Source: Blastocladiella emersonii ATCC 22665 (taxonomy: Eukaryota; Fungi; Blastocladiomycota). Taken from it: 64,000 bases of DNA. The notes under the pieces are model-generated. The model had not been told where the DNA came from, made no database searches, and worked only from the letters and a program-made list of their open reading frames with translations. Positions 50,736 to 58,987 of the stretch are shown here, one piece after another; positions within the stretch are counted from its first letter, which is position 1; every line of letters starts with the position of its first letter. A program made the position numbers and the translations under genes. The stretch spans positions 4,836,001 through 4,900,000 of the forward strand of contig JANHCV010000001.1 of NCBI GenBank assembly GCA_025594325.1, given 5' to 3'.

Positions 50736-50954
50736 ACGATGTGATTTGAAGTCAAGTGTTGCTGTCAAGATAGCTGGATGAGGTGCCGATCTAGGAGATC
50801 TTGGTCCGGCGAGTTTTAAGCGTTACATTATTGGCCAATGAGGCAGAGACAAAAGTGGAGACGCGTCGCGAAATAACGTGGTGTCCGCGTGACTTACGTC
50901 GCGTCGCTTTCGCCACCTCTGCTATTTACAAATCAAACAACAAAAATTGGAGGT

Positions 50955-51189
50955 AAAGTGCACCGGCCGACAATGCGGCCGAACGAGGGTCACCCGGCCC
51001 AACAGGGCAGGGGCACCTCGCAGCTGGGCTCGCTGCTACTATTCGAGCCACCGCCCCGCCGCTGACTCCTAAGCACAGCGCGTGCTCGTGGTCTTGGCAA
51101 AGGAAGCACGGACGTGCGGACACGATGCGTGTCACACGCTCGGACCCAGCTGGTGGATGGTGAGGGAAGGAGGGTAAGGACGGCTTGCA
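50955..51189 (-). ncRNA. Candidate Fanzor omega-RNA scaffold (3' of the nuclease ORF)
   Basis: It lies directly downstream of the Fanzor stop and contains several stems: CAGCTGGG/CCCAGCTG (51021-28/51145-52), GACACG/CGTGTC (51119-33), AGCAC/GTGCT (51072-86) and GGCCG/CGGCC (50965-80). The sequence becomes abruptly AT-rich below ~50957. Confidence 0.4.
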
Positions 51190-52758
51190 CTACTCGACCG
51201 TGGGCGTGGTGCGGCGCTTGCGGTGGTAGCGATGCTTGGGGCGGGCGGCGGGCAGCGGGTTGCCGTCCGCGTCCTTGGCCTGGTCCTCGAAGACGAGCTG
51301 CTTGATGGCAAACGAGAGGATGTTGACGGCCGCGTTGCGGTCGCGCTGGACGCGGACGCCGCAGCGACGGCACGCGCGCGTCTGGGACACCTTCTTGTTG
51401 GTCTTGCCGAGCGGGTTGGTCTTGTCGGCCTTGGCGGCGGCGGGGTCGGCCATGGCGCACGCGGCGCACCACTTGCTTGAGTAGTTCTCGTTGACGGCGT
51501 ACACGGTGACGCCGCGCGAGCGCAGCTCCTTGACCATCTCGACCACGGGGCCCTTGTTGGCCGCCGAGATCATGTCGAAGCCCGAGAAGTTGCGGCCAAT
51601 GAGCACGACGTGGCCGCGCAGCGCGCGGGCGAGGTCGGCCCAGTACGCCTTGCGGCGGCCCTCGTTGGTGAACTTGGTGCTGCACACACCGTGGCTGCAG
51701 TTCTCCTCGACCTTGGCCTCCATGTACTCGGTGGCGACCCGAGCGACCGCGCGGTGGTCGCCGGCAACGCACGAATGCGCTGCATCGCCTTGTACGAGGC
51801 CCGCCTTGGCGCGTGACGCCTTGCGCTGCTCGCGGGCCTGGTCGGTGCCGACGTGGTGGTGGAACTCGTCACTTGACAGCGACCAGAACAGCGGCCGAGT
51901 CAGGACGACGCGCGAGACCGCCGACCGAATGTACGCCTTGAGCACCTCGGACCACGGGCCGTCGCCACCCTGCGCCGCCAAGTACGCAAGGTACTGGAGC
52001 CGCCGGAACAGGCGCGCGAGCTCGAACGGCACGACGAAGCCGGTGAGGAAGTCGCGCACGCCGGCGTCGATGACAAACATGCGCTGGCCGTAGCGGACGA
52101 CAATCTTCTTCTTGTGCGACTCGATCTTGTCGCGGCCGCCCGGGATCGGGACCTGGACCGAGCCATGGGGCGCGAGCTTGTCGGCCTCGGCGAGCACCTG
52201 GTCGAGCGTGAGGCCGCCTGCGCCGTCGACCGAGACGCCCGCGAACGGCTTGTCGAACTTGCCCGTGGAGCGACGCCCTTGACGCCCGCCCGTCGTGGTG
52301 GTGGTGGTGGTGGTCTTGGTCCCGGCCTTCTTCTTGCCGGCCGCCTTCTTGACCGTGCTGCCGCCCGCGCCCTCCTCGTCCTCCTCCTCGTCACCGCCGC
52401 CCCCGACCGTGTCCGCCCTTGGCCGGATGCCGCCCTTGTACAGGTACATGCGAACGACATGGCCGTCGGTCGAGATGCGGCCCTGGAACTTGTGCGACTT
52501 GACCAAGTTGTTGTTGTATATGAAATTCATTACCATGTCGACCTCCTCGATTGCCATGTATCTTCTCGTCGATGCGACCTCCACCGCCTCGTTTGCCGCT
52601 GCTCCCTCGTCCCTCGAGATGCAAGTTGCGGCGACGACCACGGCGTTTCTCGCGCACAACGGCCACGACCACCCGCTCGCTCTCTGCCGCTGCTCCGCGG
52701 CGGATGAGCCGACCAACGTTGACACGACGACCCTGGCCTCGGTCAGCACCCTGTCCAA
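51190..52758 (-). CDS. Fanzor1-like (eukaryotic TnpB/OMEGA) RuvC + zinc-finger RNA-guided nuclease; N-terminus short or truncated (alternative start 52557)
   Basis: It has WED-like KFQGRISTDGHVV, RuvC-I FVIDAG and RuvC-II VLIG...GPVVEMVKELRSRGVTVYAVNENYSSKWCAAC. The C-terminal zinc finger and RuvC-III read CRRCGVRVQRDRNAAVNIL. Confidence 0.85.
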   Translation of the reverse strand: MDRVLTEARVVVSTLVGSSAAEQRQRASGWSWPLCARNAVVVAATCISRDEGAAANEAVEVASTRRYMAIEEVDMVMNFIYNNNLVKSHKFQGRISTDGHVVRMYLYKGGIRPRADTVGGGGDEEEDEEGAGGSTVKKAAGKKKAGTKTTTTTTTTGGRQGRRSTGKFDKPFAGVSVDGAGGLTLDQVLAEADKLAPHGSVQVPIPGGRDKIESHKKKIVVRYGQRMFVIDAGVRDFLTGFVVPFELARLFRRLQYLAYLAAQGGDGPWSEVLKAYIRSAVSRVVLTRPLFWSLSSDEFHHHVGTDQAREQRKASRAKAGLVQGDAAHSCVAGDHRAVARVATEYMEAKVEENCSHGVCSTKFTNEGRRKAYWADLARALRGHVVLIGRNFSGFDMISAANKGPVVEMVKELRSRGVTVYAVNENYSSKWCAACAMADPAAAKADKTNPLGKTNKKVSQTRACRRCGVRVQRDRNAAVNILSFAIKQLVFEDQAKDADGNPLPAARPKHRYHRKRRTTPTVE

Positions 52759-54011
52759 GCAGTTCGACGACCCCGCCGACGCCCAAGCCCTCGGGTGCCA
52801 CGCCGACGCAGGGCACCAGTCGTCGGGTCTCGTTCTCGCTCAAGGACCTCGTGTACGAGTTTGAGCTCGAGTACGAGTGCAAGTGCGACGAGTCGGAATC
52901 CGACGAGTTTGACGGAAGCGACGAGTCGGCCGACCTCGTGCCCGAGCTCAAGTCCGAGTACCGCCCGGCGCCGTCCATGTCCACCACGGATGTGTACGCG
53001 CGCCGCTGCGAGATGTTCGGCCCCATGTGGAACGAGCTCGCGACCACCAACCCCACCGCGCGGGCCGAGGCGGTCCGCCTGATGCGCGACGTGTTTGCCG
53101 GCATCGAGGCCCGCAAGCAGCAGCACCATGACGGGGCCCAGAACCAGGACCAGCGGGAGCAGGAGCTCGAGCAGTACCAGCCGATGGCCGTCGTCGACGC
53201 CAAGCACATGAAGTGGCAGCAGTGGCAGCAGCCCGAGGCGCGCGCGTGGCAGTCCGCGCCTCATCATGTGTCCGGTTCGACATCGACGCAGTACCAGCAG
53301 CACGAGTACCAGCGGTACCAGTGCCAGTACCAGTACCAGCAGAGGCCGCAGACGTTTCACTACCCGGTCCAGACCCTCATGTCGACCGGCCAGCCGCGGG
53401 TGCACCAGGCGTTCGAGTGGCACGACACGCCCGCCTTTGCCCCCGTCTCTCCCTCAACCCCTACGGTCCCGAAACAGCTGCAGTGGCAGCAGCAGTTGCA
53501 GGGCCATCTCTCGACTACCATCCCCGCCCCGCCCGTGGTCCCAATCCAGCTGTCGTGGCAGCAGCTCCAGCAGGACCACCACCATCCCAAGCCGGCCGCG
53601 ACGCCCGTCGTCGTCCCTCAGCTGCAGTGGCAGCAGCACCAGAACGGCAAACCGTTGCCGCCGCCGCTGAACAAGACCGAGTCCGAGGTGTCGTTCCCGC
53701 CGATCGTCTTGTCGTCGGTCCCGCTCGCGTCGCTCAAGCAGAGCAAGTACTGCGAGATCATGACCCAGGCCAAGCGCTGGGTCCGCTACCACTGCAGTCG
53801 TGGCAGCGGCAGCAGCTCGGCCGTTGTTGGCCCGACTTCGCTGACGGCAAGCAAGGGCAGCGAACTCGGCTCGGACCAGACGCTCGTTGGCACCGAGTGT
53901 CCGGACCCCAAGGCCAAGTTCTCGTCGTCGCCGCGCTCGCCCAAGTGGAGCGCGCTCAAGCGCCGCTGCGCTGCCGTTTTCAGTCCGGCGGCGGCAGTCA
54001 AGGCGTGTTGA
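52619..54011 (+). CDS. Q-rich hypothetical protein with an RVxF motif and repeated QL(Q/S)WQQ units; start uncertain
   Basis: ORF 52551..54011 has host-like codons from ~52780 onward. Upstream of that, GC3 bias sits in the frame starting MQVAATTT at 52619, which implies a frame break. Confidence 0.55.
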
Positions 54012-56424: not shown

Positions 56425-58341
56425 TCACAATTTGGTCGCCACCGTGAGCTGCTTGAGGTGCGTAAGCGAGTTGAGGCTCGTTCGAACAGCGTCGCTGATG
56501 CTGACCGCCTCGATCTTGACGTCCTCGAGATTCGGCCACAGGTCCACCGGGATTTTTTCAGGCGAACCGCGGACTTTAAGTTTGCGCAGCTGAGCGAGCT
56601 GCACATGGCGAAGGACGTGGCACATGGATGCCGAAATATCCAGGTCGCGGAGATACGGAAAGTGAGGTTGCTCGTTAATCTTGAAGTAATCGTCCCGCGC
56701 ATGAACCCCTGGAATCACGATACGCCCAAGCTTTGGTGACATGAGAGACAATTTTAGTAAGTCCCAGTCGTCCCACTTGGCGTAAGCATGGCAACCTTTG
56801 TGCTCGCGCGCCATGCGCACCTCGCGAAGGGCGGGAAACGCAGGCCAAAACTGTAAATCGATGTGGGGAGAACACTTGACCATGTAAGCTTGGGCCTTGT
56901 CACTGTGAAGTTGCGGAGGCGCGGGGTAGTTCATGGTTGCGTGGCACCATTCGGACATGTCGTTGTGGAGGACGAGAGTTTGAAGGACAGGAAACGCGAA
57001 ATCACCAGAGTTGAAGTTTGAGGTCGACGTGAACAAGCCGGTTACGCATGAGAGGGTGAGTTCGAGTGATCGCAGGCTTGTCATGGATGCAGAAACGTTG
57101 GAATAAAAACAGCCCGATAGGCCACCTGTGGCAAGTACTGCCAAGTACTCAAGGTGCGGATGCGTCAACATGCTTTGGAACTGTTTGGGACAAAGCGATT
57201 CCCCGCGCAGTGTGAGGGACCAGATGCGTCGGTAAGCGCAAGGCTGTGAATTGTCAAATTTGTAACCATTGTCCAAAGCAAGCCCTGCCTCGACCTCATC
57301 CGTAGCACTGCTCTCCTCCTCGTTCAAATTACTTGGTGTAGGGAGAAGTGTTTCTCCTGCCTGAGGCGCGGCTGCTGCTTGAAGCGGATCGCCCACGAGG
57401 TAGCCTAGACCAAGCCGACGCAACTGTCGAACTTGGTTTTTGGTGAGGATCAACGAGTTGGTCGAGGGCTCGGCGTGATAATTCAGGTATTGGGATTCAA
57501 AGTCGAGGTCGCGCACGCCCAGCGGGACGAGGTCCAATATTGAGCCCACACCGCGGTTGGAGAAGCAATATGTCGCAGCGTGCGGAAAGCAGCGAGCGAG
57601 GGCAGCTGTAAAATCGAGAATACCTGCGGACACGGAGCGTACCGTGAGGAACTTGATTGCAACCGGGTCGAGTTCCTTGAGGAAGGGAAGACGATTAAGG
57701 TCGCGCGGACCGCAATATGATGAGAAAAAGGCCTGTTCTTCGATCCCGTCAAGGATCGAAAGTGACGACACAAGCGGAAGCGGAAACGGGACGAAAACAA
57801 GGTCGTCGGTGACTTCGCAAGCAGAGACGACTTTTGAAAGCGCAGTTTGATCAATAAAGTGCGACCACAACGAAGCCAGGCCCGTGCGAACCCGGTCGAG
57901 CTCGGAGCATGCGTTCGCTTGGGATGCCATGCACAGCTTGCCGCCGCGAACCACAAACGGGTAAACAAAGGGAGCCTCCGAGTACGTCCAAGGGCAAGGA
58001 AGTAGTGGGGAAGTGTTCCGGTTTCGGGGGACCTGTAAATTGGGAACGGGAAGCGCGTCGATCATACGGTCCCACTTGGACGGGAATGGGTCCATTGCAT
58101 CAAGACGGAGTCCGAGGACCAGCTCGCCAAAGACATGGGGGCGGGATGCAATGTAAGCCGCACGGCTAAGGTTACCGAGGCGGAACAGGTCCCAGCGCCA
58201 CGTATCAGCATCGTCCTTCGAGTCACGGCCTCGAGCCACGATGAGGCCGACGACAACTTCCCAAAGTTCAACGGGCAGGTCAAGATTGGGAGCCTTTGGT
58301 GGCGCTATTGCATCAAGTTTCATGTGTTCAAATTGCTCCAT
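56425..58341 (-). CDS. F-box/LRR-like protein (tandem paralog 1)
   Basis: MEQFEHMKLDA...DLPVELWEVVV...WRWDLFRLGN is F-box-like. Later SLRSLELTLS, VLQTLVLHND, LRDLDISA and LRKLKVRG are LRR-like. Confidence 0.7.
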   Translation of the reverse strand: MEQFEHMKLDAIAPPKAPNLDLPVELWEVVVGLIVARGRDSKDDADTWRWDLFRLGNLSRAAYIASRPHVFGELVLGLRLDAMDPFPSKWDRMIDALPVPNLQVPRNRNTSPLLPCPWTYSEAPFVYPFVVRGGKLCMASQANACSELDRVRTGLASLWSHFIDQTALSKVVSACEVTDDLVFVPFPLPLVSSLSILDGIEEQAFFSSYCGPRDLNRLPFLKELDPVAIKFLTVRSVSAGILDFTAALARCFPHAATYCFSNRGVGSILDLVPLGVRDLDFESQYLNYHAEPSTNSLILTKNQVRQLRRLGLGYLVGDPLQAAAAPQAGETLLPTPSNLNEEESSATDEVEAGLALDNGYKFDNSQPCAYRRIWSLTLRGESLCPKQFQSMLTHPHLEYLAVLATGGLSGCFYSNVSASMTSLRSLELTLSCVTGLFTSTSNFNSGDFAFPVLQTLVLHNDMSEWCHATMNYPAPPQLHSDKAQAYMVKCSPHIDLQFWPAFPALREVRMAREHKGCHAYAKWDDWDLLKLSLMSPKLGRIVIPGVHARDDYFKINEQPHFPYLRDLDISASMCHVLRHVQLAQLRKLKVRGSPEKIPVDLWPNLEDVKIEAVSISDAVRTSLNSLTHLKQLTVATKL

Positions 58342-58987
58342 GGTAGTGTTATGCTGCAGCGAATGTGGGAAGCGGGCCGGGAACGAAGTCCAAACTTTGA
58401 AGCGCCACCGAATCGATGCAGCCGCCCGGATCACGGGTCCGATCACGCAACTCTGGAACGACACGCGCTCCTGTCCGCCTCGCACGCAGCGGGAACATGA
58501 AAATATGAGAACGTTAGCGAGAGTATATATCAAACGTTTAGGTCTAACATCAATTTCGGCTGAAAGCAAGCGCCGCGCTTGCATGACCGCCGGGTGAAGG
58601 ACGGCCCGTCCTTCACACAAGTGCTTGATCGCACCTCGCTGTGCGGGTTTGGCCTCAGGGACTGGACATTTGGCGCCAACGACTGTACAACTCGAGCCGG
58701 CCTTACCATATCTTCGCGCCATTGGGGTTAGCTTGGCGGTCGTCCTGATGTGCTCTCGGTTCTTGTGGAGCCTGCGCTAGGCCCGGGTGTTGAGATCCTT
58801 TCGTTTTGTATAGTGCGTGACGTGGGAAAACTCGGGCAGTTATCGCTAGACACCATTGAGAGTTCGACTAAAGAACTGTCAATCTCCTTGCCAAGCGCAG
58901 CGTACGGTTGAACGATGCGCCGCGGGATGGGACTCTCCAGAAACCATAACAAGACTTTAAATTCGACAAATGATACTAGCAAGAGCA

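Follow-up and report, generated by a model that had tools for sequence, protein, structure and literature searches.

A probable 5'-truncated, inert copy of a multi-copy Fanzor1-type element in Blastocladiella emersonii

Introduction

Does an open reading frame (ORF) with an intact RuvC catalytic triad encode an intact RNA-guided endonuclease? This question is raised by a locus of the fungus Blastocladiella emersonii ATCC 22665 (assembly GCA_025594325.1), which lies in a stretch of 64,000 nucleotides (contig JANHCV010000001.1, positions 4,836,001 to 4,900,000), referred to here as the window. An ORF of 522 amino acids with a TTG start occupies positions 51190..52758 on the minus strand, the strand of all features of the element given below. 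An earlier note, made from the DNA letters alone, had described this ORF as a Fanzor1-like RNA-guided endonuclease, perhaps of a new compact or domesticated lineage. The ORF is real, and all motifs listed in that note were found in it, in the order given there. Our analysis showed that the locus is very likely a 5'-truncated copy of a multi-copy, B. emersonii-specific element of the Fanzor1 type. It is probably no new compact or domesticated nuclease, but a genuine and inert Fanzor1-type copy that has lost its 5' side.

Copies of the element and loss of the 5' side

At least six copies of the element, 86-96% identical, were found in the genome. The six loci read were the window copy and five sister loci (L001, L002, L003, L004, and L019), which by blastn are 90-96% identical to the coding remnant in the window. 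DNA homology between the window and the sister loci opens at or inside position 52493 (residue ~90) and closes at 50920-50928. The 3' end was the same in every copy, ~264 nt beyond the stop codon (~50926 in the window), and the shared terminus reads ...CCAATTTTTGTTGTTTGATT(T)GTAA. The 5' break points differed, lying (in window coordinates) at 51686 in L019, 52140 in L003, 52293 in L004, and 52493 in the window copy; L001 and L002 extend 121 nt further upstream of 52493, and L002 beyond that. The collection of genomic copies, which the earlier note had proposed as a way to define the ends, thus gave a constant 3' end and variable 5' ends. DNA contigs from four public runs of a single sample, probably the assembly's own, were also examined; no run of RNA was listed. 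Summed contig depth over the element was 4-10x that of the flanks and stepped exactly at ~50936 and ~52457-52490. Several extra contig break points were present on the 5' side, and the one at 51686 coincides with the break of L019. In run X4, loose contig ends at window positions 51839 and 52399 carry apparent loxP-type letters (ATAACTTCGTATA...), which would fit the linker of a Cre-lox mate-pair library, not biology.

The coding remnant homologous to Fanzor proteins, as delimited by blastn to the sister copies, comprises residues ~90-522 and the stop codon (51190..52493), and its translation contained no stop and no frameshift. The 5' extension, residues 1-88 (52494..52758), resembled no member of the family at either the DNA or the protein level and was modelled with a predicted local distance difference test score (pLDDT) below 50. 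These residues are read-through into flanking DNA and no part of a Fanzor. The GenBank gene model is shorter (446 amino acids, single exon, start at M77, position 52530) and is labelled hypothetical protein. An annotated divergent gene on the opposite strand (52619-54011) overlaps codons 1-47 of the ORF, and the gap between it and the GenBank start is 88 bp only. Distant paralogs of 30-40% identity likewise aligned to the ORF only from residue ~90.

In the longer paralogs P0003, P0007, P0008, P0009, P0014, and P0017, a P.L....RF strand and an A..HWD.L helix are conserved ahead of the motif N.F.G...TDG; in all, the conserved N-terminal sequence of the longer family members amounts to ~100-300 additional residues. 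When the N-terminal parts of four family members were compared with the 64-kb window by tblastn, no match to this strand and helix was obtained. A hidden upstream exon was excluded by the whole-window tblastn search with N-terminal parts, which gave no further matches. The WED strand and REC helix that the longer members have at their N-terminus are therefore gone from the window copy. Retained are the last WED strand with TDG, the disordered linker, the entire RuvC domain, a CCCC zinc finger, a basic tail, and a 3' tail of ~264 nt. A complete Fanzor1 has a complete REC lobe, consisting of N-terminal WED strands and REC1, which recognizes the target-adjacent motif and holds the heteroduplex. 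No such lobe was found in the window copy, which therefore represents only part of a family member.

In SpuFz1, the Fanzor of Spizellomyces punctatus, residues of WED and REC read the target-adjacent motif and stack the first guide-target base pair (PMC10432273). Because its N-terminal WED and REC parts are mostly lost, the protein encoded in the window, if it is made, should fail as an RNA-guided endonuclease on its own, as far as structure-function knowledge of these enzymes allows us to infer.

Several of the other copies show decay. In-register translation gave clean frames for the window copy and L001. L002 has lost 8 amino acids in frame just ahead of the catalytic glutamate, L003 carries a frameshift from a 1-nt deletion as well as a change of a zinc-ligand Cys to Arg, and L004 has a premature stop within the VDEN-Y-SSK motif. 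A 244-bp dispersed repeat (L004:47-290 and L004:10814-11057, 95.5% identical) adjoins the 5' break of the L004 copy, whose truncation may, given this abutting repeat, come from a separate insertion. The pairwise ratio of nonsynonymous to synonymous substitution rates (dN/dS) between copies was 0.33-0.5. Private substitutions of the window copy numbered 8 synonymous and 10 nonsynonymous, and the corresponding ratio (pN/pS) was 0.41, compared with 0.52 in the dead copy L003 and 0.85 in L004. By these counts the window copy is no more constrained than L003, a dead copy, and ~18 private substitutions without a stop codon are unremarkable in a frame rich in G and C at third codon positions.

Motifs and predicted structure of the retained part

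The Pfam family PF07282 (Cas12f1-like TNB) matched residues 413-480 with 40.5 bits (cut-off 26.3). Over the same stretch the guided_TnpB model of NCBIfam gave a weak match; NCBIfam scores were far under the cut-offs (34 versus 100 bits). An AlphaFold model was built from a 15-sequence family alignment; pLDDT was 80-90 over residues ~205-505 and poor elsewhere. With PF07282 above its cut-off and the core confidently modelled, the set of motifs is beyond chance. These results support the view that the locus holds an RuvC nuclease sequence of the TnpB/Fanzor/Cas12 superfamily, with an RuvC (RNase H-like) fold split by a TNB zinc finger.

The RuvC triad D231/E424/D473 and the two CxxC pairs are intact, as the earlier note had read them. 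The RuvC-I aspartate D231 (52066..52068) stands in IDAG (230-233); its column is conserved in the family alignment and invariant in the RuvC sub-alignment. The RuvC-I motif of Fanzors is DPG; it is DAG in the subfamily of the window copy, whereas most other paralog families, among them P0011, P0012, P0013, P0015, and P0017, have DPG. The alternative RuvC-II glutamate (Ealt), E424 (51487..51489) in VNENYSSK (422-429), was located by regular expression and is invariant in the family alignment. It lies exactly six residues ahead of the first CxxC (E424-x6-C431), and a position six residues before the zinc finger is how Ealt is defined (PMC10711439). G388 (51595..51597) in VVLIGRNF, 36 residues upstream of E424, would from its position alone be the canonical RuvC-II Glu site changed to Gly; change of the canonical Glu to Gly or Pro is a feature of Fanzors (PMC10530073). 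The CCCC zinc finger of the TNB domain (51361..51468), recognized by the PF07282 match and its spacing, is formed by C431 and C434 (CAAC, 431-434) and C463 and C466 (CRRC, 463-466) with a loop of 28 residues. The RuvC-III aspartate D473 (51340..51342) in QRDRNAA (471-477) is invariant in the family alignment and aligns with RD.NAA of LaTranC and TnpB.

The data also showed that the motif of Bao and Jurka, D-X(125,275)-[TS][TS]-X-X-[C4 zinc finger]-X(5,50)-RD (PMC3627910), is fully matched by D231, 195 residues, S427 S428 K W, C431..C434, C463..C466, GVRVQ, and R472 D473. A published strict regular expression, which was built for prokaryotic TnpBs, was unmatched by spacing alone (190 versus 120-160 residues, and a zinc-finger loop of 28 versus 12-18).

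The Fanzor1-type motifs named in the earlier note, F.GxIxTDG, SxxEF, KF..EG.RK, and VLIG...GPV, were all located. The WED-domain strand FQGRISTDG (residues 91-99, 52462..52488) is conserved as N.F.G...TDG across the paralog alignment; its TDG (T97-D98-G99), kept in most paralogs, is characteristic of the Fanzor1 WED domain (PMC10711439). The others are SSDEF at 295-299, KFTNEGRRK at 362-370, VLIGRNF at 385-391, and GPV at 403-405. Both the acidic, Lys- and Thr-rich stretch before RuvC-I and the basic tail are present, as had been claimed. The stretch is a low-complexity linker (residues ~115-183, 52210..52416) with DEEEDEE at 123-129 and a Thr run at 149-156; pLDDT was 26-33 over most of residues 111-180, and the length and sequence of the linker differ among paralog families. 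The C-terminal tail RPKHRYHRKRR (residues 506-516, 51211..51243) is kept in all copies of the subfamily and is possibly a nuclear localization signal.

The insertion of ~50 amino acids after RuvC-I, which the earlier note had regarded as unusual, turned out to be conserved family-wide. Residues 245-286 at its start (51901..52026), directly after the RuvC-I strands, were modelled as two long helices, H245-263 and H268-286, at pLDDT 76-89, and fall inside the stretch that aligned to SpuFz 362-623. In Fanzor1, REC2 consists of two long helices that project from the RuvC domain (PMC10711439), and the modelled pair looks like this REC2-type double helix.

The conserved 3' tail as a candidate omega-RNA region

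Downstream of the stop codon, the alignments of the copies and the step in contig depth delimited a conserved non-coding tail (50926..51189) that ends in ...TTTTTGTTGTTTGATT(T)GTAA. The tail occupies the place where the omega-RNA scaffold of a Fanzor would lie, with the guide starting beyond ~50926, and is therefore a candidate omega-RNA region; the expectation of the earlier note that the omega-RNA is encoded at the 3' end of the element agrees with this position. Two tail types were observed, type A in the window copy and L001-L003 and type B in L004 and L019. Comparison of L004:12148-12435, L019:4375-4670, and window 50905-51195 showed that the types share the first 20 nt and the last ~135 nt of the tail but are ~40% different over its central ~150 nt, although their coding parts have 93-95% identity. 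Two tail types in one subfamily point to recombination between element lineages.

If the tail were still transcribed, the locus might act as a guide locus resembling the "ghost" loci of S. punctatus: the protein would be dead, the omega-RNA would be used in trans by an intact Fanzor elsewhere, and the guide would be the flank below ~50926 on the minus strand. The tail is complete up to the common end of the family, and its 264 nt differ by 4-6% among four copies, compared with a coding synonymous divergence (dS) of 7-11%. Two adjacent hairpins, 50985-51019 and 50960-50984 (together 50960..51019), are retained in both tail types according to RNAalifold, with one compensatory change of C-G to U-A and several one-sided changes. 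In addition, S. punctatus has "ghost" loci of omega-RNA only, and these sustain the activity of SpuFz1 in human cells (PMC10432273). However, the single-sequence fold of the tail was no better than that of shuffled sequence (z -1.34, not significant), the covariation comes from two independent lineages only, and none of the six loci has an intact protein of the subfamily. We therefore regard a working guide locus as rather unlikely, and an inert truncated copy remains the preferred reading.

Assignment to the Fanzor1 type

A Foldseek search with the confident half of the model gave SpuFz1 as the best match (E 2.9e-6). In the structural ranking, Fanzor1 structures held the top five places, 1-3.5 Z units over Cas-phi (10.1), mimivirus Fanzor2 (9.8), and ISDra2 TnpB (9.5). 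The family profile searched against the PDB matched LaTranC (1.6e-5), TnpB (4e-4), Cas12f, and SpuFz1 (0.0077). A profile of the RuvC helical region alone had no significant match in the PDB, so sequence by itself cannot assign the locus to Fanzor1. Taken with Ealt, the TDG motif, the helix pair, and the motif of Bao and Jurka, the structural ranking nevertheless makes a Fanzor1-type origin highly probable. The description of the locus as a Fanzor1-like endonuclease therefore holds for its RuvC/TNB sequence, whose nearest known kind is Fanzor1, and fails for the N-terminal WED/REC sequence, which is lost and leaves the copy incomplete.

In an exhaustive phmmer search, 16 of 1.8 billion representative proteins matched below E 0.001. 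Ten of the 16 were looked up by name, of which nine were from B. emersonii and one was a spurious orchid protein; the others listed were copies from the same genome. Single-sequence, exhaustive phmmer, profile, and C-terminal-region searches found no homolog outside B. emersonii save this orchid protein. As judged by these searches, the family is a very divergent one with homologs known from B. emersonii alone. The nearest ESM Atlas clusters contained TNB proteins of 600-800 amino acids from eukaryotes or giant viruses. A scan of IMG/VR viral contigs gave 11 weak TNB-domain matches (24-37% identity) without a label of Fanzor type, which were not used for a tree. A literature search found no mention of Fanzor in Blastocladiella, and the species is absent from the supplements of PMC10711439 as far as their text is searchable. 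A divergent paralog, P0008 (505 amino acids, L004:19090-20631, minus strand), lies ~7 kb from the truncated copy L004 11051-12411. In the family alignment it shares ~31% identity with the window ORF; it has WMDPS in place of DPG at RuvC-I, with Ealt and the RD motif intact.

These results could also be read as a separate eukaryotic radiation of TnpB or Fanzor2-like proteins, possibly derived from giant viruses, whose likeness to Fanzor1 would be convergent or limited to a shared RuvC core. No homolog below E 1e-3 was found outside the species among the 1.8 billion representatives, the profile E-value to SpuFz1 is weaker than those to LaTranC and TnpB, the helical region alone does not retrieve SpuFz1, the subfamily has DAG and not DPG, and the ESM Atlas neighbours are largely Nucleocytoviricota. 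However, the five highest ranks and their lead in Z units belong to Fanzor1 structures, the TDG motif, the long double helix after RuvC-I, and full-length paralogs of ~640 amino acids (P0007) are Fanzor1 traits, and none of the six neighbouring ORFs has a serine-recombinase (IS607 TnpA) domain. A separate radiation is thus improbable, and we retain the Fanzor1-type assignment.

Mobility and surroundings of the locus

As the earlier note had stated, the element has no adjacent transposase: none of the six large neighbouring ORFs (48.4-60.9 kb) contained such a domain. No inverted copy of the terminal motif, and hence no terminal inverted repeat (TIR), was found in any locus, no target-site duplication (TSD) flanked five of the copies, and no copy had a poly(A) tract at its 3' end. 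Because all copies have one 3' end and different 5' ends, replication anchored at the 3' end may have produced them; the nearest precedent for such spread is the Helitron2-borne Fanzor1 elements of Chlamydomonas, and the actual mechanism may differ from theirs. An origin of the copies as mRNA retrocopies is unlikely in view of the missing poly(A). A broader proposal is that the family spread by a 3'-anchored replicative route, either Helitron2-like rolling-circle or RNA-mediated, that would be new for fungal Fanzors, and that its truncated copies retain a use, either as omega-RNA "ghost" loci or by encoding REC-less RuvC proteins that act in trans to modulate an intact member of the family; we give this proposal little credence.

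The GC content at third codon positions (GC3) of the remnant was 0.93, within the 0.87-0.94 of the GC-rich genes of the window. The codon usage is thus host-like, as previously noted, which fits a long residence of the element in the B. emersonii genome. Between 48000 and 60900, the GC content of the window was 0.55-0.64 in most 2-kb bins and GC3 was 0.53-0.78; both are lower than in the remaining window, where GC3 is 0.87-0.94. The six large ORFs tested in this region had no Pfam match, and for the ORF 56425-58722 on the minus strand the ESM Atlas offered no more than a weak F-box-like lead. Scanning the window for Rfam families and tRNAs gave no match.

Two of the sister loci have neighbours of their own. 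A full Argonaute/Piwi gene (ArgoN, PAZ, and Piwi; L003:11688-14599, minus strand) lies ~440 bp downstream of the 3' end of the truncated copy in L003, on the opposite strand. L002:17686-22676 is part of a predicted gene of 8047 amino acids made of 1491-bp tandem repeats that are 100% identical; this may reflect collapse or expansion of a repeat array, or an artefact of the assembly.

Discussion

Several observations weigh against an inert, truncated copy of a transposable element. The frame of 434 codons is intact, with all catalytic residues and zinc ligands present, and the dN/dS of 0.33-0.5 leaves some room for constraint on the lineage or even on the window copy. The extent of the loss was judged from sequence conservation, and the N-terminal half of the family is poorly modelled (the first 300 residues of the closest long relative, P0003:185-788, have pLDDT <50). 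With neither TIR, TSD, nor transposase, the term transposable element would draw on copy number and shared ends alone, and none of the six loci that were read holds a full-length, intact master copy of the subfamily.

An active minimal RNA-guided nuclease of 446-522 amino acids, or a host gene derived from one, would account for the intact frame and triad, the GC3, the basic tail, and the single-exon gene annotation in GenBank, and TnpB enzymes of ~400 amino acids are active; however, the short length reflects a break in homology and not the design of the family, residues 1-88 are unrelated to it, the conserved N-terminal strand and helix are missing, the locus is one of at least six copies that differ in truncation point and in several cases carry disabling lesions, and its private substitutions are no more constrained than those of dead L003, so that this possibility deserves hardly any weight. 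The earlier suggestion of a compact or domesticated Fanzor lineage is therefore set aside: the small size comes from 5' truncation, and a multi-copy, decaying sequence is no single conserved host gene.

As a gene fragment, the locus itself matters little. The family extends Fanzor1 to Blastocladiomycota, and only profile and structure comparison ties it to known Fanzors. It also carries a warning for annotation: finding the RuvC triad intact in an open frame is no guarantee that the Fanzor itself is intact.

Among known systems, SpuFz1 (PDB 8GKH, 9CEU-9CEZ) shares with the window copy the alternative RuvC-II Glu, the CCCC zinc finger, and the TDG of the WED domain. Both hosts are zoosporic fungi, and S. 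punctatus also has many full-length and partial copies with no transposase inside the element (PMC10432273). However, the two proteins are only 12-17% identical and phmmer draws no connection between them, and the window copy lacks an equivalent for most of the N-terminal WED/REC part of SpuFz1 (~360 residues). Inverted repeats of 30 nt bound the SpuFz1 elements at both ends, whereas a search for an inverted copy of the 3' end was negative in the B. emersonii copies, which are truncated from the 5' side. ISDra2 TnpB and Cas12f represent the canonical TnpB family: in TnpB the canonical Glu precedes the zinc finger by ~50 residues and the motif is D-hydrophobic-G (PMC10711439), whereas the window copy uses Ealt six residues before the zinc finger and has Gly at the presumed canonical site.

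The Helitron2-borne Fanzor1 elements CRe-1/2/3 of Chlamydomonas reinhardtii (PMC3627910) differ from the B. emersonii copies in that they insert after TTTT and that the truncated ones have TSDs of 7-19 bp, whereas five B. emersonii copies have neither TSD nor T-rich 5' flank. They have the same constant 3' end and variable 5' truncation as the six B. emersonii copies. One-ended propagation of this kind, with a shared 3' end and varied 5' truncation, is the second example after Chlamydomonas, and it could help to explain how Fanzors move without a transposase of their own.

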